In this document: piece after piece, positions 8,911-47,811 of the stretch | How the letters are laid out: each line of letters opens with the position of its first letter | How positions within the stretch are numbered: position 1 is the stretch's first letter | Source of the DNA: Heteronotia binoei | Taxonomy: Eukaryota | Direction: 5' to 3' | Length of the DNA: 64,000 bases | NCBI RefSeq assembly: GCF_032191835.1 | Contig: NC_083228.1 | Location: 122,388,001 to 122,452,000, forward strand | Position numbers and translations under genes: made by a program | Notes under the pieces: generated by a model | The model's input: the letters and a program-made list of their open reading frames with translations, nothing else | Database searches by the model: none | Told to the model about the DNA's origin: nothing

Positions 8911-9909
8911 GCTTCCTTCCACTAATACAGATTGCAAGCTGTACTGTTAGGTTTCTTCCCCCTTCCCTCCCGTTCTGTTAGAACTGAAAAGGGGGATCTC
9001 TCTCTCTCTCCCTCTTGTGCTCTCTCTGGCTCTTTCACTCCCCTCCATCCCATTGAAGAAGTGTGCTTGCACAGGAAAGCTTATACCTGGACTAAAACTT
9101 TGTTTGTCTTAAAGGTGCCACAGGATTGTCTCTCTCTTCTCCCTCTTTGGCTCTTTGTCTCCCCCTCCCTTCCTCCCCGGAGGAGGGGGAGGAGCACAGC
9201 CAATCAATGGAAGGGAGTCTTGGCTTTCTTTCTCCCCTCTGCAAAGCAGGAAGCAGGAGAGGAGAGAGCTGAGCAAAAGGAAGCAGACGAGAGCCAGTTG
9301 TTTGTGGGATGAATAGGAGACCTGCAAAAGGCTGGTTCTGTCCCATGAGCCGTATGTTTGACACCTCTGCTCTAGAAGTCTCTTGAGCTCAGAACAACTG
9401 AAAATTGCAAGTAACTTGCCTTGGCTCAAGTAGCAAGACAAACAACTAAATCCTACTTGCTAATCCAGTATCTGCAGTTTCATATATTTGTCAATTACAT
9501 TTTTGTCCCACCCTTCTTCTAAAGATTTCAGTGTGGTGTCCATAGTCCTCCTGTCATCCATTTCATCTTCACAACAACCCTACGATGTTGGTCAGACTGA
9601 GAGACAGAGACTGAACTGTAGACACTGTCATCTTAAAGTGATCTAACACAGCACTCAAAAAGGCACAAGGGACAGGGCAAGAGTGCCTCAGGCCTCTGTG
9701 CAGAAAGCCCAATCAGGACTAAGCCCTTGCAGCATCGTCAAATCACTTTAAAAATGTGGTGGCATCCAGTCTAACCTGTGGATGCCGTCATGTCTAGTTT
9801 GACCCTCATTCACATAAAAACAAACGATGGATTGCCTGTTACCTCTGAATCAAGCCCTGAACACCAAAAGCTGCTGTAAGGAACCAAGAATCTCTATATG
9901 CTTTCTTAC

Positions 9910-10060
9910 CTGAAAAAGGCTCCTCATATGCAAGTTCTTCTCTGTTTTGTAAGGTGATGGCTGGTGGTGACAGGGTTGGTGGTGTCGGGGTCCTTGCCAT
10001 GCGGAGACATTCCGATTCCTCTGGCATCTCTTCCTCACACATATCCTCCACTTGATAAAT
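9910..10060 (-). CDS. PHC3: PHC3 coding exon 9 (IYQVEDMCEEEMPEES...EEPFS)
   Basis: Acceptor catgcag| at 10061, donor G|gtaaga at 9909. 151 nt. Matches recalled human YQVEDVCEEEMPEESDECVRMDRTPPPPTLSP. Confidence 0.95.
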
Positions 10061-14818: not shown

Positions 14819-15580
14819 TGAACTGGCAGAGACTGACCAAGAGAGAGATCTTGGGGTCGTGGTAGATAACTCGCTGAAAATGTCAAGACAGTGTGCGATT
14901 GCAATAAAAAAGGCCAACGCCATGCTGGGAATTATTAGGAAGAGAATTGAAAACAAATCAGCCAGTATCATAATGCCCCTGTATAAATCGATGGTGCGGT
15001 CTCATTTGGAATACTGTGTGCAATTCTGGTCACCGCACCTCAAAAAGAATATTATAGCATTGGAAAAAGTGCAGAAAAGGGCAACTAGAATGATTAAAGG
15101 TTTGGAGCACTTTCCCTATGAAGAAAGGTTAAAACACGTGGGGCTTTTAAGTTTGGAGAAACGTCGACTGCGGGGTGACATGATAGAGGTTTACAAGATA
15201 ATGCATGAGATGGAGAAAGTGGAGAAAGAAGTATTTTTCTCCCTTTCTCACAATACAAGAACTCGTGGGCATTCAATGAAATTGCTGAGGAGTCAGGTTA
15301 AAATGGATAAAAGGAAGTACTTCTTCACCCAAAGGGTGATTAACATGTGGAATTCACTGCCACAGGAGGTGGTGGCGGCTACAAGCATAGACAGCTTCAA
15401 GAGGGGGTTAGATAAAAATATGGAGCAGAAGTCCATCAGTGGCTATTAGCCACAGTGTGTATATATATGTATGTGTGTGTGTGTGTACATATATAATTTT
15501 TTGGGCCACTATGTGACACAGAGTGTTGGACTGGATGGGCCATTGGCCTGATCCAACATGGCTTCTCTTATGTTCTTATG
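14819..15580 (+). mobile_element. 5'-truncated CR1 LINE (C-terminal ORF2 plus 3' UTR ending ttcttatg repeats)
   Basis: ORF 14859-15449 contains [28 protein letters not shown] and YFFTQRVINMWNSLP, all CR1 ORF2 motifs. Confidence 0.93.
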
Positions 15581-18490: not shown

Positions 18491-20586
18491 AGCTCTGTTA
18501 ATGTAGTTGTCACCAGCATGCTGATGACACTCAGCTATATATTTAAATAAACCACCACTCTGTCCCAGCCCAGTGTCTCAGTGCCGCGGTCAAGTAGCAG
18601 GGGAGAGAACAAACAGAAACCGCATCCAAATAAAACAAAGGTGATGCTGGTTGAAAGACCCATTGATCAAAATGGACTGTTCTTTCTACCACTTCAGGGT
18701 GCAGCTTTTGCTGAAAAATGCTGTTAAGAGTTTCCCCTCCCAAGCTACATTTAAGTAAGGAAGAAGGTTCCCTCTTTGCTGTTGCCTGAAGGCCTCCTGA
18801 TCCATGCATCAGTGACCTCAGGGCTACATTACTGTAACATACTCTGCATGGGGCTGCCGTTGAAAATTACAGCTGGTGTGAAAGCAATAGCCCATGTATT
18901 ATTGAGGCTAGCCAGTGGGACGGTATCACTTCTGTTCTGAGCTCTCTTAACTGGCTGCAACTAATTTCCAGGCCCAATTCAAAGTGCTACGCTTACCTTT
19001 TAAGCATTTAATGACCTGAGGCCCGTGTGGCTGAAGGATTGTCTCTCCTGGCACATTCTCATATGGCAGCTTTAGTCTTCTCAACAAGATCTATTGTCAG
19101 CACCTCTTTTGTCTAAGGCCCATTCTGCAGTTGTTCAGGCTTGGGCTTTTTCAATGGCTGCCTCATGTCTGTAGAACAGCTGCCTGGAAGAGGTCACGGG
19201 GACTCCTACTCTTCTGGCTTTCAAATGAGACTATAAAATTTAATCTGGAGAGCTTGTGGAGGCAGCTTGAACCTGAGAAAAATGGAGGAATACCCTCCTT
19301 TGCGGACATGCGGTGTTGCTAGGTGGTTTCTCAATTTTAAATCTCAGTATCTGACAGATTCTTTTTATATTGGCGTTACTTGCCTTTGGTCCTGATATGC
19401 TCAGGCGAAAAGTGGGTACATAAATAAGATTATCTATCATCTCCAGAACCACCAAACAGAATAGCGCACTAAAAGAAGCCTTAAGGGCATATAACCTAGT
19501 TCACAGGAGATCCTAAGATCTCACTTGCCTTCCCCACAGCTCACTCTATACTTGAGACAACTCAATAGGAGGCTATCAAGCCAAGATGGCTGGGGATACA
19601 CAGACAGCAGCTGCTCCACAACTATGGAATTTCACTGCACTCGGAAACAAGCAAAATCTAAAGACAAAACAGTTCTGCCTAGGCTTCTTGTCCATGTATG
19701 TGTGTATATGTCAAAACATTATGAAGTTAGGGGGTAGGGCTTTGTTTGTACTGAGATACATTGGGATGGATGCATCCAGCTTCTCACTCAATCCCACCCA
19801 ATTCCTTTATTTATAACAGCACCTGCTCAACATGGCTTTGATCCATGCAGTTCCCACAATCCCCCAGCACTGCCTTGTTGTTGTTAAAAGAAATCCCTCC
19901 TTCCCTTTTCTCCTGCTGAAATGTTGATTGGGTCCAACTCATTGTGTTTTTAGTGGTTTTAATTTAGCTTCACATAATCCATATTTATTTAAATCCAGGG
20001 AGCACAGCAGGCTACAACATGGAGGAGGCAGGGAGGTTTCATCCAGTAAATGCCAGCAGGTTTGTGGTGCACAGGGTCACTTCCAGTAGATATCTTTTTA
20101 AATAGGTAACAATAAAAACAAAGAAAATGAAACTAAAGGTAAACTGGATAAAAAGACAAAATGGAATAGGATACACAATGATAGTAACAGAAAAAAGGCA
20201 CCAAGTAAAAGTGGCAAATTCAATTTTTTGTTGGGGAGGGTCATATTAAGGTTTCTTTGTGAGGTCACCAGAAGGCCTGAGAACCTACACAAAAGTATTT
20301 TAAAATATCCCCCTGCTAAATATTTGAAATCTGTGGAATACTAAGTTTTATGCAATTGCAATAAAACATTCATTTGTAAGAAAATGAAGCTTAGCACGGA
20401 TAAATGCTTCCTTGATGTTCTGAAATTGATGGATATTTAGGAACCAAAATTATGGACTCATATGTCTTTCAGCTTTCAATCTTTTGGGTATACTTTTAAT
20501 ATGGGATTAAGCAATGGGAAATACAAAGTAAAGTTTAGTCAACCATGGTTAAGCATCACTGGCTGGTGGATGATACTGATGCTTTA

Positions 20587-20700
20587 TGATGTCACTGATG
20601 TCATGGAAACCATGTGTGCACACAAATGAAAATGCCATCTGCTAGTACAAGAGCATGGAAAGCTGAGAGAGGAGGCAACATCTTGAGTGGGGCAGGGTCA
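20587..20700 (+). promoter_or_regulatory. Conserved promoter/5' leader block of AKAP4-like copy 1
   Basis: 101/114 identical with no indels to 36372-36485. TGATGTCA occurs twice (20587, 20596). X-box-like GATGTCATGGAAAC at 20597-20610. Confidence 0.7.
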
Positions 20701-20762
20701 GTAAAAACTGAAACAAGAGCGCTCCACGACCCGGGGTTCAATTCTGGTTTCGGACACCTAGT

Positions 20763-22838
20763 ATGGCTCAGGAGATCGACTGGCTAAGTAGTCAAGCCGG
20801 TCTCAGCAAAGTTGATATCTACAGCGCAGAAAATCAGAAGGATCAAGATCGTAAAGTCATCTGCTTTGTTGATGTCTCCAGCCTTAACGTGAAAGACCAG
20901 AAAAGCAAGAGAGCTAACATTGCTGCCCCTTCCCCTGACCTTGACCTGAGTAATCTTGAAGAGAAAGAAGTAATTGTAATAAAGGATAAAGAGCGAAACA
21001 ACCACTCCAACACTGAAGGAGCAGTTTGCCTTTTCAAGCAAGGCTCCTCTGAAGAAGTTAACGTTGTCAGCTGGCTCAGCAACGACCTTCAGAAATACGC
21101 AGTTGGATTCCAGCATGCACTAACCCCCTCAGGGCACCGTAAACCTTCTTACGATTCCTCTGCAGTTGACAGGATGTCCCAAGGCAGCAACACATCATTC
21201 AGGGGCTCTGGTAGCCAAAGAGGAGATGACCTCTCCTATTATGTTAACAAGCTGTGTTCCTTAGTGGTTCAAATGGCACATAAAGAAATGAAGGATAAAC
21301 TTGAGAGTGGTAGATGCATTCGCCAGTCAATTAATTCTCGTGGATCTCCAAGCAAGATTTCATCCAGTGAAGATTATGGTAAGTTATCCCCAAAGACATC
21401 TCATCATGACCCCGGGAAGGCTTCACTCTTTTATGGAGAGATGTCTAATCAATCTAACGCGAATGCCTACAGACAGGGACAAGATGGACAGATGTGTCAA
21501 AGGAAACAGTCTGGACAATCAGATGATGGTTCTGTAAGCAAAGGGCTGATGGTATATGCAAACCAGGTTGCTTCAGATATGATGTTCTCATTCATGAAGA
21601 CCATGAAAGTTCAGAAAGGTAAGCACCCTCCACCAGCTTGTGTAGTCTTAAAGAAGGTACTCCTCAAACACACCAGAGATGTCATATCTGACTTAATTGA
21701 CTCCACCATGAAAAATCTTCACAACGTCACCGGAGTACTCATGACAGACTCAGACTTCGTTAATACAGTGAAGAAGAACCTTTTCAATGCGGGAACCCAG
21801 AAGTCAACTGAGATTTTGGAAGCAATGGTGAAACGCTTATTTAAAGCACTGGCAGGGGATGATAAGCACAAATCTCAAAGCCTTGCATTTGCAGCACTGA
21901 AGGCAGGTGCTCATTCAGACTCCAGATCTCAGGGACTCCAATTTGCATCGCTTAAAGGTGAACTGCACGGCCCAGGGAGGGACAGGGGTGGACAAATGAG
22001 ATCTCATCAAAGTGGAAGCAAAGGCTCAGACAAGCACTGCTCAATGGATGTGTACGCGAAGGACCTTATTGTAACAGCATTAATGTTAATTCAGCAACAC
22101 CTCCTAGAAAAAAACAAGGACCAAGGTCACCACCGTGAGACCAACACCACATCATTTGGCTATGTTCATGACAGGTCTGGTGGTGGTTCCAAACACAGTC
22201 AAAAACATGGCAGCGGGAAGCATGATGCTCATCTTGAATCACAAAAAGGTGATATATCAAGTATTCTCTTGTCAATCATCCAGAAAGTACTGAGAGAAGC
22301 TGGTTTCAGTTCAGACGAAGGATCCCCTGACAGGGGCTATAAACAGCCTTCTTTTACTGACAGCAGACAACATAAGGCCATATCAAAATCAAGCCCCGAG
22401 ATGTATGACAACATGGAACAAATAAACAAACAGTTTATTGATCAGCTGGTGGAATCCGTGATGAAGCTGTGCATGTTGATGGCTAATGGCAGCGACTTTG
22501 ATGGAAGACATGGCGGAAGACACCTAGGTTCAACAGGCTCTGAAGTGATTGTGAACAACCAGAATTCCAACAACAGTTCTCAGAACAGAGAGCTGCAAGC
22601 TGTGCTCCAGTGGTTGGTTGCTTCACAGTTCAACGTGCCCAATCTGACATTCATGAACGAGCAAGATGGTGACTTGGCCAGGCTTCCTCAGCTGGCTGAC
22701 AAAGCAGCCAAAAAAGGCTACAGCGTAGGAGATATTGTTCAGGAGGTGATGCGGTACTACGAGAAACAACAGATGGATGCCATGTCAGGGCAAATGCCTC
22801 GGTGTGGACTGGTCGATTGGCTCCTTGCTAACCTGTAA
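20763..22838 (+). CDS. AKAP4: Intronless AKAP4-like A-kinase anchoring protein, copy 1 (691 aa; AKAP3/AKAP4 family), nested antisense in PHC3 intron 6
   Basis: Single ORF with AKAP4 motifs: IDWL, DQDRKVICFVDV, TEGAVCLFKQ, DDLSYYVNKLCSLVVQMA, KGLMVYANQVASDMM, DLIDSTMKNLHNVTGVLMTDSDFV, LQAVLQWLVASQFNVP, C-terminal LVDWLLANL. AATAAA lies downstream. Strict orthology to AKAP4 is untested. Confidence 0.9.
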   Translation: MAQEIDWLSSQAGLSKVDIYSAENQKDQDRKVICFVDVSSLNVKDQKSKRANIAAPSPDLDLSNLEEKEVIVIKDKERNNHSNTEGAVCLFKQGSSEEVNVVSWLSNDLQKYAVGFQHALTPSGHRKPSYDSSAVDRMSQGSNTSFRGSGSQRGDDLSYYVNKLCSLVVQMAHKEMKDKLESGRCIRQSINSRGSPSKISSSEDYGKLSPKTSHHDPGKASLFYGEMSNQSNANAYRQGQDGQMCQRKQSGQSDDGSVSKGLMVYANQVASDMMFSFMKTMKVQKGKHPPPACVVLKKVLLKHTRDVISDLIDSTMKNLHNVTGVLMTDSDFVNTVKKNLFNAGTQKSTEILEAMVKRLFKALAGDDKHKSQSLAFAALKAGAHSDSRSQGLQFASLKGELHGPGRDRGGQMRSHQSGSKGSDKHCSMDVYAKDLIVTALMLIQQHLLEKNKDQGHHRETNTTSFGYVHDRSGGGSKHSQKHGSGKHDAHLESQKGDISSILLSIIQKVLREAGFSSDEGSPDRGYKQPSFTDSRQHKAISKSSPEMYDNMEQINKQFIDQLVESVMKLCMLMANGSDFDGRHGGRHLGSTGSEVIVNNQNSNNSSQNRELQAVLQWLVASQFNVPNLTFMNEQDGDLARLPQLADKAAKKGYSVGDIVQEVMRYYEKQQMDAMSGQMPRCGLVDWLLANL

Positions 22839-22989: not shown

Positions 22990-22995
22990 AATAAA
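22990..22995 (+). terminator. Polyadenylation signal of AKAP4-like copy 1
   Basis: AATAAA about 150 nt after the stop, in a context (ctgggcaagctcatcAATAAA) shared with copy 2 and followed by an A-rich run. Confidence 0.7.
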
Positions 22996-26859: not shown

Positions 26860-26883
26860 AGAAGCTAAGCAGAGACCACCACT

Positions 26884-27346
26884 GATAGAGGTTTACAAGC
26901 TTATGCTTGGGATAGAGAAGGTAGAGAAAGAAGTACTTTTCTCCCTTTCTCACAATACTAGAACTCATGGACGTTCAATGAAATTGCTGAGCAGTCGGGT
27001 TAGAACTGATAAAAGGAAGTACTTCTTCACCCAAAGGGAACACGTGGAATTCACTGCCACAGGAGGTGGCAGCAGCTACAAGCATAGACAGCTTCAAGAG
27101 GGGACTGGATAAGCATATGAAGCAGAGGTCCATCAGTGGCTATTAGCCACAGCATATTGTTGGAACTCGCTGTCTGGGGCAGTAATGCTCTGTATTCTTG
27201 GTGCTTGAGGGGGGCATAGTGGGAGGGCTTCTAGACCCCCTGGTGGACCTCCTGATGGCACTTGTTTTTTTTTTTGCCACTGTGTGACATAGAGTGTTGG
27301 ACTGGATGGGACATTGGCCTGATCCAACATGGCTTCTCTTATGTTC
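26884..27346 (+). mobile_element. CR1 3' fragment, same family as 14819-15580
   Basis: SLSHNTRTHG...YFFTQR peptide and the shared 3' UTR ending gcttctcttatgttc. Confidence 0.88.
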
Positions 27347-29121: not shown

Positions 29122-29328
29122 GGGGCTGTGGCTCAGTGGTAAAACCTCTGTTTTGCATTCAGAAGGTCCCTGGTTCAATCCCCAGCATCTCCAGTTAAAA
29201 GGACCAGGTAAGCGGTGATATGAAAGATCTCTGCCTGAGACCATGGAGAGCTGCTGCCAGTCTGAGAAGACAATACTGACCTTGATGGACCGATGCTCTG
29301 ATTCAGTATAAGGCAGATTCACATGTTC
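29122..29328 (+). mobile_element. tRNA(Ala)-derived SINE (Squam2-like)
   Basis: Head ggggctgtggctcagtggt...ggttcaatccccagcatctcca. The body recurs at 3988-4180, 59131-59342 and 61803-61982. Confidence 0.75.
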
Positions 29329-29731: not shown

Positions 29732-32700
29732 TGCCAGAACACCTGTAGAAGAATATGAAGCACGTGCTTCAGAAAGGACTCTTCAGGCTGCTCCCGACTG
29801 TATGTGCTGCCGGTACAGAGACAGAAGGAGAAGAGAGGCTTAATTTCCTGGGAAGTCACTAATATTCTAAGGATTGGGTGCAAATAATCTACAGACTAAT
29901 TTTTCTCGGGCCACTGAGGCTAAAATGTTAGTGGAATATTGCCATGTTAACAGGTCAGTGGGGCAGGAGTGAATGAACATCATTTATTCATGTTGACAGC
30001 TGGTACAGCACAACATCTAAGACAGAGCAAAAGTCCCTAGTTTAAAACTCACTAGGGAAGGCTCACACTATCAACCTCAGTCCCACCCACCCCCCCATAT
30101 GAGACAGGGGAATAACAACACTGATTTACCTTATAGGGTGGTGGTTCAGATTTCAGCAGTGGAGCACTCTAAAGTGATGTCTGAATTGTTTTAACTAAAA
30201 CTAGAAGAACCAACAACTTATGAAGAGAGACAGTACTCACCATTTATGCAAGACTGCAACAGGGTCTGTCTTCACTTTTTAAACTCCCAGTAAGGGGAGC
30301 TCTTTTTCAGCCACTGACTTCCAAGAACTTGAAACACCTCAATTTGCCTACTTAAGCAGGGAGCAATTTTCTCCCTAGAAAATGTTTGAGTCTTGCTTCT
30401 TCTGTTTTTTGTTATTAGCCAATTAGTGATAGATAGTCCTTTGTCCTGAAGCAGCATTCCTCAAGAGGCTTTAGCATAGACTCGGCCCCAATCATCCCAT
30501 TGGTCTACCACCAGTTAAGGTCCTAGATCTTTGCTTAGGTAACTGTCAGTTTCTGGTCTAGGCTATCTGGCTCTCTTCTCTACTGCTATCCATAGCAATG
30601 TATCGGAATGCTTCATATTTTCAAAGGATTACAGGATATTTAAAGCATGTCATGTAGTTCTCGATAATCATGACAACACCCATTTAATGCTACTTACCTA
30701 TAGCCCAGTGGCTGGCACTTTGATGTGGTATAAGTGTGTCTACGATTCACATACTGGCCAAGTTAACATTTCAGAAGAAAGTTGACAGGTAAAGGGAGGG
30801 GGGAACAAATAATTTGAAAGTACATATTCTCTCGATATCAACAGACTGTCATAGGACAACACCTAAACTCTCTTCCTAGCAAATACTGAAATTTTTCTAA
30901 AGTTTTAGGTGAAATAAATAGTAAAATGATTTATTTAGTCTACTATACTCTGTACTGTAAGTCTTAATACAGGTGAGCTCTACAGACTTCAGCACTGTCT
31001 GCTACCTCTTCTTCATGAACCAAGGGACATTACCATGCTTTTTGGAAAAAGCAGCACAAAATTTCCCAGTGGCAGCAAGCTGTTCATATTGAATGATGAG
31101 ATTGCATAAAACTCTACTGTGGGTGAATAGGAAGTTGTTAAATAATACAGCAGAAACTGTATCCATGGCAACTCTTCTCCTTGCAGCCCTAATTTGCAGC
31201 TCCAAAGATCCTTGTTGCGGAGCAAGATGCTTTTTAAAGTTTATTATTGGCTGTTTGTATGCAGCCTTTCCATACTTGACTGGTATACATGAATTAACAT
31301 TAACTGAGCAGCAGTCTCAACTGTTTTACATCACTGAAATGGTCTATTCTGGCTTAATTAAAAGTTCAGCAAAATTAAGAGTCACACTATACAAAAATGA
31401 TGGAATATTTACAAACAGATCTCTTTTTCTTTTTAAAAAAACTGCACATAGCAGGTTCAAGGGAACAGGATACATTCAGATCAGGGCCATGGAAAGAAGT
31501 CTTACTCATTGTTCTTCATGCTGTTTTTATACTACCAGTTTCCTCAGTGGGCGTATTTTCCCACACCCAGAAAAAAAAAATGTAGTAGCCTTCCCTCTTC
31601 ATTCCTATGAGCAGGCTTCAATGTTCTAAAGATAGATGGGACATCTGTATGCTTCAGAAATTCTACAGGCACAGAGAAAAACAGAAGCACATCACCCTTA
31701 GAGTGTCCTCCAGCCCCAGAACAATCCTCTTCAAGCTTTTAGGAGGAGTCCCTTCTCTCACTCACAGCACCAACATCCCCAAAAGAAGCTGGGATACAAT
31801 TAATCCCAGTCCTCCTACACAATGGGGTTTGGTAGCCAATGCGACATTTTCATGCAGAGTATGGCAAGGGAAGAAAGTATGAAAAGACCAGAGCACATGC
31901 AAAGACAACATTCTTGGTTTTAACACCACAATCTGAGCAAAAGAATGGTCTGCTGCACTATTTGAAGACAATGATTCTAACTCCTGTAAATAGAAAACTA
32001 GGAAGGATTCACAGCTGGCCTTTGTGAATTCTTATTATTCTTCCACATGAAATCCCCCTTTAGTAGGGAGAATTCAAAGCAGCAACCCCCCCCCCCATAC
32101 CCTGAACACGCATGCCACCAGCATAAAGTAACACAGTCCAGGAAATGCTTTACCACTTAATCTTAAATTGGTTTTATGACTCTGCAGCCAATTATGGAAA
32201 GAAGATTAATCTCAGGCCAATTTGCATGCCTTTGAACTGTCAGATGCTGGCTACTGAATTGCTGAATGCTGAATCTGCTGCTACGTGATTAATACATTTT
32301 TTTCTTCATACCCATATTTTTGTTCACTCTGAATCGCTCAACATCGTTTTGGAGGATACGCTTTAAGAACATAAGAGAAGCCATGTTGTGTTTAAAACAA
32401 TTTATTATAATGTAATATATTGTAATAGCATATTATCATTTGTTATTAAAAGTTAATACACATTCATTACATTTTTTCCACTCCTCCCCCCTTTTAGTGA
32501 CCCCTGGCAGTGCCAACCCCATAAGAGAAGCCATGTTGGATCAGGCCAATGGCCTACATAGGGAAACAACTAAAAGCCTGCTCTACCAAATTTTTAGGAA
32601 AGAGTAAGAGTCCAGTTACAGGTATCTGAAGCAGTGACTCACTAAAGCTCATACCCTGCTGCAAATGTTGTTAGTCTTTAAGGTGCTACTTACTCTTTTC

Positions 32701-32764
32701 TGATGCTACAGACTGTCCTGATCTACTAACATTTTATCATTCTTAACTGCCCAGATCCACCCAC

Positions 32765-32945
32765 ATCTCATCAGATCTTGAAAGCTAAGCTGAGGCAGCC
32801 CTGATTAGTACATGGAGGGGAGACCACCAAGGAAGTTCAGGGTTGCTTTGCAGATGCAGCCAATAGCAAACCACCTGTTTGCCTCCTGCTTTGCAAATCC
32901 TATGGGGTTACCATAAGTCAGCTGCAACTTGACAGCACTTTACAT
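32765..32945 (+). mobile_element. 5S rRNA-derived SINE
   Basis: atctcatcagatcttgaaagctaagc...ttagtacatgga...gagacc resembles the 5S internal control region, followed by an RTE-like tail gcaaaccacc...ggggttaccataagtc. Confidence 0.65.
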
Positions 32946-36371: not shown

Positions 36372-36485
36372 TGATGTCACTGCTGCCATAGAAACCATGT
36401 GTGCACACAAGTGAAAATGACATCTGGCAGCAGAAGAGCATGGAAAGTTGAGAGAGGAGGCAACATCTTCAGTTTGGCAGGGTCA
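36372..36485 (+). promoter_or_regulatory. Conserved promoter/5' leader block of AKAP4-like copy 2
   Basis: Paralogue of 20587-20700. TGATGTCA at 36372-36379. X-box-like GCTGCCATAGAAAC at 36382-36395. Confidence 0.7.
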
Positions 36486-36556
36486 TCAAAGCAGCTTAGG
36501 TGAGAAAGAACATCCCCTACGGTCCTAGGTACAGTTCTACTTCCAAGCCTCAAGTG

Positions 36557-38899
36557 ATGTCTCAGGAAGTTGACTGGTTACACAGCCAAGCTGGCGTGTG
36601 TAAGGTAGAGCTCTACAATCCTGAAGCAGGGAAAGACCAGGACCGGAAAGTGATTTGTTTTGTTGATGTCGCCAGCCTGAACATAAAAACAGATGATAAA
36701 GATGCTGCTGGCCAGTCCAAAGACAATGAACCTGCCACAGGACTTGATCTGGGGAAAATGCAGGACAAAGAGGTAATTGTAATAAAAGATAGTGAGACAC
36801 CCGAGCAGTCTAAGACTGAAGGAGCAGTATGCCTTTTCAAACAAGGTTCAACAGAAGAACTTAATGTTGTGACCTGGCTCTTTGATGACCTGCAGAAATA
36901 TGCATGTGGATTTCAACATGCACTGACCCCTTCAAGTGCCCCTCATCAACCTAAGCCATCAGCAGCTGACAAGATGTCCCAGAATAACAACAACACGGCT
37001 TTCAAATCTTCCAGTGGTCAGAAAGCACCTGCAGATGAAGTAGCAGGCACCGTCCAAAAACTCTGTTCTTTGGTTATGCAAATGGCTAGTAAAGAGATCT
37101 CTGAAAATCTGGAAGATGCAGCCAGCAAGTGTATACGCCAGGCAATTTATGCGACAAAAGATGGGAAACCTCTCAATCCTGGTTCTGTAAGTCAGGTTGC
37201 ATCCAAGATGGTGAATGACGCTATGGAAAGTGCTCAGGACCCCAGCGCTAAATCATCTCAAGACAATATTTCAGGCAAGAAGGAAGAAGGTAAAGGAGGT
37301 CCCAAGAAAACCTCTCTCTTTTATGGTGAAGTATCTTCCAACCAAAGTGAGTCTATTCAGGAAGAAGACAAGCCACCATGTACCCAATTGATTTACCCAA
37401 AGAGACAGTCAGCTCGCAATGATGGTAGTTCTTTTAACAAAGGGCTAATGGTTTATGCAAACAAAGATGCTAAGGATATGACATTTTCATTTGTGAAGGC
37501 CACAAAGGTTCACAAGAGGCAACCACTGCCAGCCTGTGTGGTTTTGAAAAGAGTATTCCTAAAGCACACAAGGGATGTCATATCAGACTTAATTGACTCT
37601 ACTATGAAAAATCTACATAATGTTACTGGGGTCCTCATGACAGACTCTGACTTTGTTACTACAGTTAAGAAGAATCTCTTCAATGCAGGAACCCAGAAGT
37701 CTACTGAGATTTTAGAAGCAATGGTACTACGAATGTATAATGCTCTGATGTCAGAAACTAAGGACAAAGGGCATAGTCTTGTATACTCTTTACTGAAAAC
37801 AGGATGTTCAATGGACCCAAATACACAAAGTATGCATTTCGCATCTCTGAAAGGTGGACTACATACGAGGGAAAAGGGAAAGGAGACAGCACACTCATCA
37901 GCCCAGAAAGTAGGTGAGACAATAATTAAAGATGGAATTAGCATGCTACGCTCAAAAACATCAGGAGGCAAAGCTTCAGACAGGGGAAGTCATGACAGGA
38001 GGCCAGAGAAAAGCAATTCCACAACTGAATTTCTAGCAAAAGACCTCATCTTGACAGCTTTAATGTTGATACAGCAGCATCTGTTAACTCAATACAAGGA
38101 ACCAACTTCTGAGTCAAATACCTCTTCGTTTGGGTATTTTGAAAAAGGAGGCAAACATGGTTCTAGATCGCATGGTTCCAAGGGTGATCCACACCAACAA
38201 GAATTTCAGAAAGGAGAAATACAAAGTGCTCTCCTTTCTATCATCTCAAAGGTCCTACAGGAGGCTGGCTTCAATGTAGATGAGTGTGAGATAACCAAGA
38301 AATCCAATACATGTGATGACAGGACTAGCAAAAAGTCTTCATCCAAACACTACAATGCAGAGGTGGACTCTGAAAACATGGATCAAATAAACAAAAAATT
38401 CATTGATCAGCTGATGGAATCTGTGATGAAGCTGTGTATGTACATGACTAAAAGCCCCGATTTTGTTGTGGAAGATTACTCTGACGAACAAGGAACATAC
38501 TTTACTGCAAGAAACAAAGGTGCATCGACTCCAGATTCAATGACATCACAGAAACCTCCACGAACAACATCTATTGGAAAGCCACTGGTGCCTGCTGGCT
38601 CTGAGGTGATCGTGAACAACCAGAGTTCCAATACCAGTTTGCAGAACAAAGAGCTCCAGGCTATCCTCCAGTGGATGGCTGCCTCCCACTTCCAAGTGCC
38701 CAACCTCACATTCATGAATGAGAATGACGAGGAACTGAAGAAGCTTCCTCAGCTTGCGGAAAAAGCAGCTAAGAAGGGCGCAAGCGTGGGAGATATTCTG
38801 CAGGAGGTAATGAGGTATTTCGAAAAACAACAGATTGATGCCGCTGTGGGAAACATGCCTCGTGGCGGACTTCTCGACTGGTTGCTTGTTAACCTGTAG
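36557..38899 (+). CDS. AKAP4: Intronless AKAP4-like protein, copy 2 (780 aa from ATG 36557), nested antisense in PHC3 intron 6
   Basis: The ORF track starts at a GTG (36500). The ATG at 36557 (MSQEVDWL) aligns with the copy-1 start (MAQEIDWL). Same family motifs through LLDWLLVNL. Strict orthology is untested. Confidence 0.9.
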   Translation: MSQEVDWLHSQAGVCKVELYNPEAGKDQDRKVICFVDVASLNIKTDDKDAAGQSKDNEPATGLDLGKMQDKEVIVIKDSETPEQSKTEGAVCLFKQGSTEELNVVTWLFDDLQKYACGFQHALTPSSAPHQPKPSAADKMSQNNNNTAFKSSSGQKAPADEVAGTVQKLCSLVMQMASKEISENLEDAASKCIRQAIYATKDGKPLNPGSVSQVASKMVNDAMESAQDPSAKSSQDNISGKKEEGKGGPKKTSLFYGEVSSNQSESIQEEDKPPCTQLIYPKRQSARNDGSSFNKGLMVYANKDAKDMTFSFVKATKVHKRQPLPACVVLKRVFLKHTRDVISDLIDSTMKNLHNVTGVLMTDSDFVTTVKKNLFNAGTQKSTEILEAMVLRMYNALMSETKDKGHSLVYSLLKTGCSMDPNTQSMHFASLKGGLHTREKGKETAHSSAQKVGETIIKDGISMLRSKTSGGKASDRGSHDRRPEKSNSTTEFLAKDLILTALMLIQQHLLTQYKEPTSESNTSSFGYFEKGGKHGSRSHGSKGDPHQQEFQKGEIQSALLSIISKVLQEAGFNVDECEITKKSNTCDDRTSKKSSSKHYNAEVDSENMDQINKKFIDQLMESVMKLCMYMTKSPDFVVEDYSDEQGTYFTARNKGASTPDSMTSQKPPRTTSIGKPLVPAGSEVIVNNQSSNTSLQNKELQAILQWMAASHFQVPNLTFMNENDEELKKLPQLAEKAAKKGASVGDILQEVMRYFEKQQIDAAVGNMPRGGLLDWLLVNL

Positions 38900-45042: not shown

Positions 45043-47811
45043 CATAAGAACATAAGAGAAGCCATGTTGGATCAGGCCAACGGCCCATCAAGTCCAACAC
45101 TCTGTGTCACACAGTGGCAAAAAATGTTATATACACACATACACTGTGGCTAATAGCCACTGATGGACCTGTGCTCCATATTTTTATCTAAACCCTTCTT
45201 GAAGGTGGCTATACTTGTGGCCGCCACCACCTCCTGTGGCAGTGAATTCCACATGTTAATCACCCTTTGGGTGAAGAAGTACTTCCTTTTATCCGTTTTA
45301 ACCTGTCTGCTCAGCAATTTCATCGAATGCCCACGAGTTCTTGTATTGTGAGAAAGGGAGAAAAGTACTTCTTTCTCTACTTTCTCCATCCCATTCATTA
45401 TCTTGTAAACCTCTATCATGTCACCCCGCAGTCCACGTTTCTCCAAGCTAAAGAGTCCCAAGCGTTTCAACCTTTCTTCATAGGGAAAGTGCTCAAGCCC
45501 TTTAATCATTCTAGTTGCCCTTCTCTGGACTTTCTCCAATGCTATAATATCCTTTTTGAGGTGCGGCGACCAGAACTGCACACAGTACTCCAAATGAGAC
45601 CGCACCATCGATTTATACAGGGGCATTATGATACTGGCTGATTTGTTTTCAATTCCCTTCCTAATAATTCCCAGCATGGCGTTGGCCTTTTTTATTGCAA
45701 ACGCACACTGTCTTGACATTTTCAGTGAGTTATCTACCACGACCCCAAGATCTCTCTCTTGGTCAGTCTCTGCCAGTTCACACCCCAACAACTTGTATTT
45801 GTAGCTGGGATTCTTGGCCCCAATGTGCATTACTTTGCACTTGGCCACATTGAACCGCATCTGCCATGTTGACGCCCACTCACCCAGCCTCAACAGATCC
45901 CTTTGGAGTTCCTCACAATCCTCTCTGGTTCTCACCACCCTGAACAATTTAGTGTCATCCGCAAACTTGGCCACTTCACTGCTCACTCCCAACTCTAAAT
46001 CATTTATGAACAAGTTAAAGAGCATGGGACCCAGTACCGAGCCCTGCGGCACCCCGCTGCTTACCGTCCTCCACTGCGAAGACTGCCCATTTATACTCAC
46101 TGTCTGCTTCCTATTACTCAGCCAGTTCTTGATCCACAAGAGGACCTGTCCTTTTATTCCATGACTCTCAAGCTTTCTAAGGAGCCTTTGATGAGGAACT
46201 TTATCAAAAGCTTTCTGGAAGTCAAGGTAAACAACATCTATTGGGTCTCCTTTGTCCACATGTTTGTTCACCCCCTCAAAGAAATGTAACAGGTTAGTGA
46301 GGCAAGATCTTCCCTTGCAGAACCCATGCTGAGTCTTCCTCAATAACCCGTGTTCATCAATGTGCCTACTCATTCTGTCCTTGATAATGGTTTCTACCAA
46401 CTTTCCGGTATTGAAGTCAGACTGACTGGCCTGTAATTTCCCGAGTCTCCTCTGGAACCTTTTTTAAAGATGGGGGTGACATTTGCTACCTTCCAGTCCT
46501 CAGGAACGGAGGCAGATTTCAATGTAAGATTACAGGTTTTTGTTAGAAGATCCACAAGTTCAACTTTGAGTTCTTTCAGAACTCTCGGATGTATGCCATC
46601 CGGACCCGGTGACTTATTAGTTTTTAATTTGTCTATCAGTTGTAGGACCTCCTCTTTTGTCACCTCAATCTGACTCAGGTCTTTCAATACCCCTTCCAAA
46701 ATTAGTGGTTCTGGGGCGAGCAAAAAGTTCTCATCTTCCACAGTGAAGACGGAGGCAAAAAATTCATTTAGCTTCTCAGCCATTTCCCTATCCTCCTTCA
46801 GTAATCCTTTTACCCCATGGTCATCCAAGGGCCCCACTGCCTCCCTGGCTGGTTTCCTACTTCTAATATATTTGAAGAAAGTTTTATTGTTGGTCTTTAT
46901 GTTTTTTGCAATATGCTCCTCATAGTCCCTTTTTGCCTGCCTGATCACAGTCTTGCATTTGATTTGCCACAGCCTGTGTTCCCTTTTACTAATCTCACTT
47001 GGACTGGTTTTCCACCGCTTAAAGGAGTCCTTCTTACCTTTTACAGCTTCCATTACTTTGTTTGTTAACCACGCAGGCCTTTTCTTATGCCTGTTTGTGC
47101 CTTTCCTAACTTGTGGTATGTATTTTATCTGAGCTTCTAGGATTATAGTTTTAAATAGCATCCAAGCTTCCCCAAGGGTTTTGACCGTATGTACCTTTCC
47201 TTTCAGTTTCCTCCTCACATGCCTCCTCATCTCAGTGTATTTACCCCTTTTAAAGTTAAACGTGGTTGTGGCGGTCTTTTTGGACAACTCCCTATTTATA
47301 CAAATGGTGAAATCAATAACATTATGGTCACTGCTCCCAAGTGGCGCAATCACTTTTACATCTCTCACCAAGTCTTGGGCATTACTTAGGACCAAATCCA
47401 GGATCGCCCCTGGTAGGTTCTGAGACCATCTGCTCCATAGCACAGTCATTGAGAGCATCAAGAAACTCAATCTCTTTCTCTCGACCAGAACACATATTAA
47501 CCCAGTCAATCTGTGGGTAGTTAAAATCACCTATTACGACACAGTTTTTACGTTTAGCTGCTATCTTTAAGCCTTCCATCATATTATAATCGTCCTCTCT
47601 CTTTTGATTTGGTGGGCGATAACAAACTCCCATAGTTAAATTTCCTTTTGGGGCCTCTATTTCAACCCAAAGCATTTCTAAAAGTGAATCTAATTCTCTG
47701 ATCTCAGTCTTACTGGATCGTATATCCTCTCTGACATACAGAGCCACCCCACCTCCAACCCTTCCCTCCCTATCCTTCCGATATAGCTTATATCCAGGAA
47801 TCACCGTGTCC
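45043..47811 (-). mobile_element. Longest CR1 copy (endonuclease plus RT of ORF2, two frameshifts, 5'-truncated)
   Basis: Track ORFs 47382-47804 (GYKLYRKDR, GVCYRPP, GDFNYP), 46394-47530 and 45150-46400 (YLDFQKAFD, PQGSVLGP, FADDTKL). Tail gaacataagaacataag. Confidence 0.95.

Follow-up and report, generated by a model that had tools for sequence, protein, structure and literature searches.

A probable promoter and 5' leader element of amniote age upstream of two AKAP4-like genes in Heteronotia binoei

The 114-bp block lying upstream of each of two AKAP4-like genes in Heteronotia binoei was a real and very strongly constrained element. It is probably the proximal promoter together with the first 50-60 nt of the AKAP4-family 5' leader, dating from the ancestral amniote and kept in every paralogue. 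A first-pass annotation of the window (the whole 64,000-nt stretch analyzed, positions 122,388,001 to 122,452,000 of NC_083228.1) had described the block as a compact composite spermatid promoter or 5' leader under strong constraint. The promoter/leader identity and the constraint were supported by conservation and by transcripts, but the transcription factors named for it were not.

Results

Sequence conservation of the block

The features of the two genes and of their 5' regions were as follows (window coordinates).

20763-22838, + strand: AKAP4-like gene 1, one unbroken ORF of 691 aa with Pfam AKAP_110
36557-38899, + strand: AKAP4-like gene 2, one unbroken ORF of 780 aa with Pfam AKAP_110
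20587-20700, + strand: block copy 1, 5' of the 691-aa AKAP4-like gene; matches copy 2 at 101/114 positions
36372-36485, + strand: block copy 2, upstream of the 780-aa AKAP4-like gene
20470-20586, + strand: copy 1-specific upstream promoter region, with the box CATCACTGGCTGGTGG at 20554-20569
20587-20640, + strand: 5' half of block 1, putative core promoter; 56% invariant columns and the composite motif
36372-36425, + strand: 5' half of block 2, putative core promoter on the same evidence as copy 1
20587-20594, with a second copy at 20596-20603 (copy 1 only), and 36372-36379, + strand: CRE-like TGATGTCA
20602-20610, + strand: "X-box"/TATA-like CATGGAAAC, copy 1
36387-36395, + strand: "X-box"/TATA-like CATAGAAAC, copy 2
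20612-20625, + strand: palindromic ATGTGTGCACACAA in the 5' half of block 1
20641-20700, + strand: 3' half of block 1, first part of the transcribed 5' leader; 73% invariant columns and homology to a dog mRNA contig (L017)
36426-36485, + strand: 3' half of block 2, transcribed 5' leader; exact match of the Hemidactylus forward primer
20655-20666, + strand: uORF ATGGAAAGCTGA of block 1, with a purine-rich tract in the same half
36440-36451, + strand: uORF ATGGAAAGTTGA of block 2
20674-20679 and 36459-36464, + strand: GGCAAC in the 3' halves of blocks 1 and 2
20701-20762, + strand: copy 1 spacer, remainder of the 5' leader as far as the ATG at 20763; aligns colinearly with the 3' portion of exon 1 in dog and rat
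36486-36556, + strand: copy 2 spacer, remainder of the 5' leader, unspliced; reverse primer at 36525-36544

The two copies of the block matched at 101 of 114 positions without a gap, exactly as first described, and the CRE-like, X-box-like and AGGCAAC sequences noted at that time were all located in both of them. Identity fell to background (approximately 5-9 matches per 20 bases) within 20 bases of either copy. The similarity had been said to begin at TGATGTCA, which was nearly right; the true start lay a few bases earlier, at CTTT(A/G), and in other reptile copies it reached approximately 35 bases further upstream. A 20-mer taken from the block, GAAACCATGTGTGCACACAA, occurred at two sites in the window, both of them within the blocks, when 0.02 sites were expected from shuffles.

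When the two genes were codon-aligned, identity was 67% over all coding positions, 79% at second codon positions and 47% at four-fold degenerate sites. The identity between the paralogous blocks was 89%, higher than at coding sites of any class (binomial P = 1e-20 relative to four-fold sites and 0.006 relative to second positions), and the earlier claim that the block was better conserved than the coding sequence was therefore confirmed. The loci compared were those of Python (both copies at one locus), Rhineura (copy 1, copy 2 and a third paralogue on another chromosome), one other gecko and one other squamate (Logan contigs), the turtle Mauremys (two copies), alligator, and the Akap4 genes of rat and dog; alignments of 5 and of 15 block sequences were made. 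Among 11 reptile sequences, invariant columns accounted for 20% of the region upstream of the block, 56% of its 5' half, 73% of its 3' half, 15% of the spacer and 64% of the first coding bases.

Upstream of the block, the copy 1 sequence was 81-84% identical to copy 1 of Python and Rhineura over approximately 330 bp, and the box CATCACTGGCTGGTGG was common to copy 3, the turtle copies and alligator. The spacer of copy 1 was kept among orthologues, not between paralogues. Within the two spacers (20701-20762 and 36486-36556), GGT(A/T)CA(A/G)TTC was kept in both paralogues and the rest had diverged.

Mammalian counterpart and transcripts

Weak BLAST matches of four independent reptile queries converged on a single place in rat, which precedes the first coding exon by 45-110 nt, and on its counterpart in dog, which precedes the MSDDIDWL exon by 2.3 kb. 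The comparison with mammalian AKAP4 proposed in the first-pass annotation thus recovered a colinear homologue at exon 1 of rat and dog Akap4. The homology between reptiles and mammals was ordered, running through CTTTRTG-TGTCAYTG, (C/T)ATAGAAAC, CA-CTGGCA, GAG(C/T)ATGG, TGAG, AACATC and GTCATC. Two degenerate composite patterns assembled from these motifs were each present once per AKAP4-like gene, in the expected place, and nowhere else in approximately 370 kb (18 loci). The composite TGTCAYTGYT-N0-3-YYATRGAAAC occurred once per gene in the reptile, rat and dog loci; in dog it was 47-68 nt upstream of the 5' end of the mRNA contig.

Two dog Logan contigs were spliced AKAP4 mRNAs. One of these (L017, 2867 nt) carried a poly(A) run after AATAAA, and its first exon (L012:7626-7760) began 12 nt before the homologue of the GAGCATGG motif (the uORF homologue); this 5' end is that of an assembled RNA-seq contig, not a CAGE tag, and could fall short of the true one. 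The 3' half of the block was homologous to the first 60 nt of this mRNA, and the 5' half corresponded to the 76 nt just upstream of its end. An alternative first exon (L012:8351-8478), which lies within intron 1 and is joined by splicing to the same ATG exon, was observed in the dog contig L018.

Gecko transcripts were also available. The Hemidactylus flaviviridis testis cDNA clone Akap4 JZ822547 was upregulated in the spermatogenically active phase, and its qPCR primers were reported to give a 105-bp cDNA product (PMC4795608). The forward primer matched exactly at 36441-36460, with one mismatch to copy 1, and the reverse primer matched at 36525-36544 with one mismatch, giving a genomic product of 104 bp. 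Because the forward primer fell on block 2 and the reverse primer on its spacer, and the two product sizes were nearly equal, the 3' half of block 2 is present in gecko testis mRNA and the spacer is not spliced, showing that in a related gecko the 3' half of the block is transcribed as 5' leader. A transcription start far from the block had been named as a result that would speak against the promoter/leader reading; instead, the dog and Hemidactylus transcripts put the 5' ends of mRNA within or beside it, which is indirect evidence where H. binoei itself is concerned.

The possibility of a mini-intron within the spacer was rejected: the donor-like sites AGG/GTCAGT and, in copy 2, TTAG/GTGAGA were not conserved, and the gecko cDNA amplicon had the genomic length. 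Three Logan contigs (L003, L004 and L005) were rejected as transcripts, being colinear with the genome and continuing approximately 550 nt beyond the AATAAA at 22990/23001. Since they were taken as genomic, L004 says nothing about the start site, although its 5' end lies inside the block. A 721-aa gene call in L005 (931-3096) began 72 nt upstream of the conserved ATG, within the 5' leader, and is probably an ORF-calling artefact.

Gene structure, nesting and origin

In the protein search, the closest match was from Paroedura picta (92%). Both paralogues had orthologues across squamates, several copies were found in turtles and crocodilians, and identity to mammalian AKAP4 was approximately 43%. 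Akap4 of rat and dog had five coding exons; the reptile ORFs were uninterrupted. The spliced dog mRNA aligned end to end with reptile genomic DNA over the exon 1/exon 2 junction, where dog read ACAAAG + ATGTCT and turtle, alligator and the third Rhineura paralogue read CAAAGATG. The structure of the reptile genes is cDNA-like, and an origin by retroposition would account for it. The linked copies in Python, Rhineura, turtle and alligator all lay antisense inside a gene with zf-FCS and SAM domains (PHC3-like), indicating that the nesting is older than the split of squamates, turtles and crocodilians.

Candidate factors at the promoter half

The first-pass annotation had assigned the block to CREM and RFX2. 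On inspection this was a resemblance, weakened by motif mismatches and by mouse tables that did not give Akap4 as CREM-bound or RFX2-dependent, and it is doubtful that a functional CREM-tau CRE and RFX2 X-box drive these genes. The octamer TGATGTCA was exact in 12 of 13 reptile copies and differed from a CRE by one mismatch. However, it lacked the central CG, neither TGACGTCA nor an intact TGACG/CGTCA half-site was present in it, and the aligned site read TGCTGTCA in rat and TGTTGTCA in dog.

The X-box is an inverted repeat with the consensus GTNRCC-N0-3-RGYAAC. The best copies, such as GCTGCCATAGAAAC, agreed with it at 11 of 14 positions; however, the right half was GAAAC, not GYAAC, in all species, and the left half was lost in mammals (15-sequence alignment). 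The element (C/T)ATRGAAAC, located 15 bases after TGATGTCA, took the form TATAGAAAC in turtles, alligator, rat (L009:9831-9839) and dog and the form CATAGAAAC or CATGGAAAC in squamates; the TATAGAAAC form agrees with a TATA-like box no less well than with an X-box. An RGYAAC half-site was kept in the purine-rich tract after the uORF in 14 of 15 sequences, with C/T changes that the consensus permits. The half-site, noted earlier as AGGCAAC, nevertheless sits inside the transcribed leader.

Expression of mouse Akap4 was reduced by log2 5.49 in the Crem knockout, yet the gene was entered as "Bound by Crem: No" (PMC3285179 Table 2). It was absent from the RFX2/CREM target table (S2 Table of PMC4498915), where the paralogue Akap3 was entered only as a CREM ChIP target, and from the RFX2 supplement (PMC4745085). 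CREM and RFX2 are thus best kept as candidates.

The mini-uORF

The frame ATG-NNN-NNN-TRA was present in all 15 sequences, encoding MES, MGS, MED or MEG. The start codon, its context bases (A at -3, G at +4) and the stop codon (TGA or TAA) were preserved, and five of the six internal bases varied. Fisher's test on boundary against interior gave P = 0.015, or P = 0.08 if the middle base of the stop was scored as variable; the frame lies in a nearly invariant stretch, and its conservation is not cleanly separable from constraint at the DNA level. It was contained in the dog mRNA (L017:13-24), and the Hemidactylus forward primer began one base past the A of the uAUG. An AUG with an in-frame stop upstream of the main AUG was thus present in mRNA and across species, as expected of a conserved uORF. 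No description of an Akap4 uORF was found in the literature search.

Extent of the transcribed leader

It is rather improbable that the whole block is transcribed 5' leader, with the promoter further upstream around the CACTGGYTGGTGG box and the constraint mainly post-transcriptional (uORFs, a leader-bound protein). This reading draws on the way in which reptile genomic DNA follows the spliced dog mRNA through the exon 1/exon 2 junction, and on the lack of any coding intron, as a gene derived from cDNA would carry only transcribed sequence. If the genes have a cDNA origin, the promoter-like half would have been transcribed at least sometimes in the ancestor, favoring a start upstream of the whole block. 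Copy 1 orthologues were also conserved for approximately 120 nt beyond the 5' edge of the block, and the transcript behind the 665-bp Hemidactylus cDNA clone may reach further 5'. However, the dog mRNA contig began 76 nt into the homologous region although AKAP4 is abundant in testis, a TATA-like element stood in the 5' half at a suitable distance, and RNA structure was absent. Further, the squamate 5' half contained up to three extra ATGs that were not kept in alligator or mammals; these matter only if the 5' half is transcribed.

Under the preferred reading of promoter plus leader, transcription would most likely start inside the block, at approximately 20605-20655 in copy 1 and 36390-36440 in copy 2. 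The best guess for the start is approximately 30 nt downstream of (C/T)ATRGAAAC, near 20630 and 36415, a position predicted because the spacing of the CRE-like and TATA-like elements matches that of compact spermatid promoters. The conserved DNA sites are in the upstream half, with the TGTCA-containing CRE-like octamer approximately 15 bp before the TATA-like element. The downstream half lies in the mRNA, where an invariant AUG in strong context opens a 3-codon frame closed by UGA/UAA, followed by an unstructured purine-rich tract with the RGYAAC motif; this half may plausibly set the use and timing of the main AUG approximately 100 nt downstream. The exact start site, the bound factors and a role of the uORF in translation are inferences.

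A more tentative proposal goes further: the transcribed half may be an amniote-wide translational timing device in which uORF and purine tract delay AKAP4 synthesis to late spermiogenesis, and the sauropsid AKAP4-like genes may be cDNA-derived copies carrying a working core promoter. If true, this would account for a promoter and leader held in common with the mammalian X-linked gene and for the lack of its introns.

Selection versus gene conversion

The block was found 5' of every AKAP4-like gene compared, on the same strand as the AKAP_110 ORF. Block 1 was 96% identical to its Rhineura orthologue and 88% identical to that of Python; block 2 reached 98% identity with the orthologues of both Python and Rhineura, against 86-88% with the turtle copies and 82% with alligator. 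Overall, orthologous blocks were 88-98% identical for copy 1 and 98% for copy 2, and copy 1 and copy 2 blocks were 82-89% identical to each other. Block identity was 78-88% in comparisons with the turtle copies, 71-82% with alligator and approximately 55% with mammals. Four-fold sites were 70% identical between gecko and Python.

The first-pass annotation had offered local gene conversion as the alternative. It is very improbable that conversion between the tandem copies keeps this patch similar, even though the copies are in the same orientation only 15.8 kb apart and the similarity stops sharply at both edges of the block. Most of the 13 differences between gecko copy 1 and copy 2 were fixed, paralogue-specific and common to gecko, Python and Rhineura. 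In a maximum-likelihood tree of block plus spacer, the copy 1 clade (100/100) and the copy 2 clade (99/99) were fully supported. Since the tree grouped blocks by paralogue and orthologues were closer than paralogues within a species, concerted evolution is excluded for the squamate crown group. The block was also kept in the unlinked third paralogue and in mammals. The alignment across squamates that had been called for therefore showed conservation between species, not homogenization within them, and the block is held by purifying selection acting separately in each paralogue over the long term, not by recent copying.

Two other copies had patterns of their own. The two Mauremys copies were near-identical over their first approximately 80 residues and 83% identical at four-fold sites, with blocks only 87% identical; this pattern, the reverse of that in gecko, suggests that the 5' end of the coding sequence was recently duplicated or converted in turtles. 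The third Rhineura paralogue was shorter (537 aa) and carried the block twice in tandem (L011:9546-9725 and 9797-10044), the distal block being followed by a G-rich (GGGGCA)n run and the mini-uORF being kept in both block copies. Homology boundaries between this paralogue and copy 1 are to be read with the neutral flanks saturated at that divergence.

Other identities and neighborhood of the block

It is extremely unlikely that the block derives from a repeat or transposon, encodes a small structured RNA or a short exon, or serves as an element of the antisense host gene: its boundaries are sharp and the genes lie inside an opposite-strand host gene, but the only two copies in the window stood one at each AKAP4-like gene with none elsewhere in the 18 loci, and the block was also present at the X-linked Akap4 of rat and dog and at the unlinked Rhineura copy, where no host gene was called. 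The repeat family contemplated in the first-pass annotation was accordingly not found, the block being no repeat in the window or in the 18 loci. No Rfam family matched a region overlapping the block. Its predicted RNA fold was no more structured than that of shuffles (z-scores +0.37 to +1.73), and no covariation was detected (consensus energy -5.2 kcal/mol, covariation term -0.53). A coding exon or N-terminal extension was rejected, as stops occurred in all three frames in all species.

Elsewhere in the window, 32746-32843 (+ strand) gave a borderline Rfam match to 5S rRNA (38.1 bits against a gathering score of 38) and 29122-29193 (+ strand) an Rfam match to tRNA (32.7 bits); both lie between the two genes and are probably SINE-type repeats, not genes. 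An interspersed repeat flanked the gene pair, with 14819-15580 and 45043-45780 inverted and 91% identical. Copies of it also matched between 26883-27346 and 45048-45418, and there were short pieces at 32364-32554.

Discussion

Significance

Promoters of testis-specific genes usually evolve fast. That of the AKAP4-like genes was 98% identical across squamates while four-fold sites stood at 70%, and it was traceable to mammals. The block is best read as a well-delimited new example of a promoter plus leader element that is older than the amniote radiation, with added interest from the universal mini-uORF and the cDNA-like gene structure. At approximately 170 bp, block and spacer form a compact module for expressing the main scaffold of the fibrous sheath specifically in spermatids, and one that lends itself to experiment; the searchable literature yielded no dissection of cis elements in the Akap4 promoter. 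The mini-uORF offers a testable handle on the control of AKAP4 translation, and the exact colinearity between spliced mammalian mRNA and the reptile locus is relevant to movement and intron loss in the gene family.

Comparison with known systems

Exon 1 of mammalian Akap4 (pro-AKAP82) had the same order of TGTCAYTGYT, (C/T)ATAGAAAC, the GAG(C/T)ATGG uORF, AACATC, GTCATC and the leader to ACAAAG/ATGTCT, and the dog mRNA began inside the homologue of the block. Unlike in the reptile genes, an intron of 2.3-3.5 kb separated exon 1 from the ATG exon in rat and dog, and rat exon 1 had an ATG of its own. In the reptile genes, by contrast, the leader ran directly into the ORF, and block identity to mammals was approximately 55%.

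Compact CRE-plus-TATA promoters of round spermatids are known from protamine 1, transition protein 1 and testis ACE. The block likewise placed a CRE-like octamer approximately 15-20 bp before a TATA-like element in a promoter of less than 200-300 bp. As in those genes, expression was testis-specific and linked to spermatogenesis (gecko), and mouse Akap4 was genetically Crem-dependent. However, the octamer departed from the canonical CRE, no CREM binding was detected at mouse Akap4, and the TATA-like element of squamates had degenerated to CATAGAAAC or CATGGAAAC.

Retrogenes of the Pgk2 type are testis-expressed processed genes that kept or carried a promoter. The reptile genes similarly had an intronless ORF and a leader exactly colinear with spliced mRNA, and they were nested antisense in an intron. 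They differed in that homology reached upstream of the observed 5' end of the mammalian mRNA; a poly(A) remnant and a target-site duplication would not be expected at such an age.

Finally, the mini-uORF may be set beside the conserved short uORFs of 5' leaders, although here it is a putative regulator and the distance from cap to uAUG may be short. It shares with them an AUG in strong context, a stop after three codons approximately 100 nt before the main AUG, and boundaries kept in 15 of 15 sequences while the internal codons vary.
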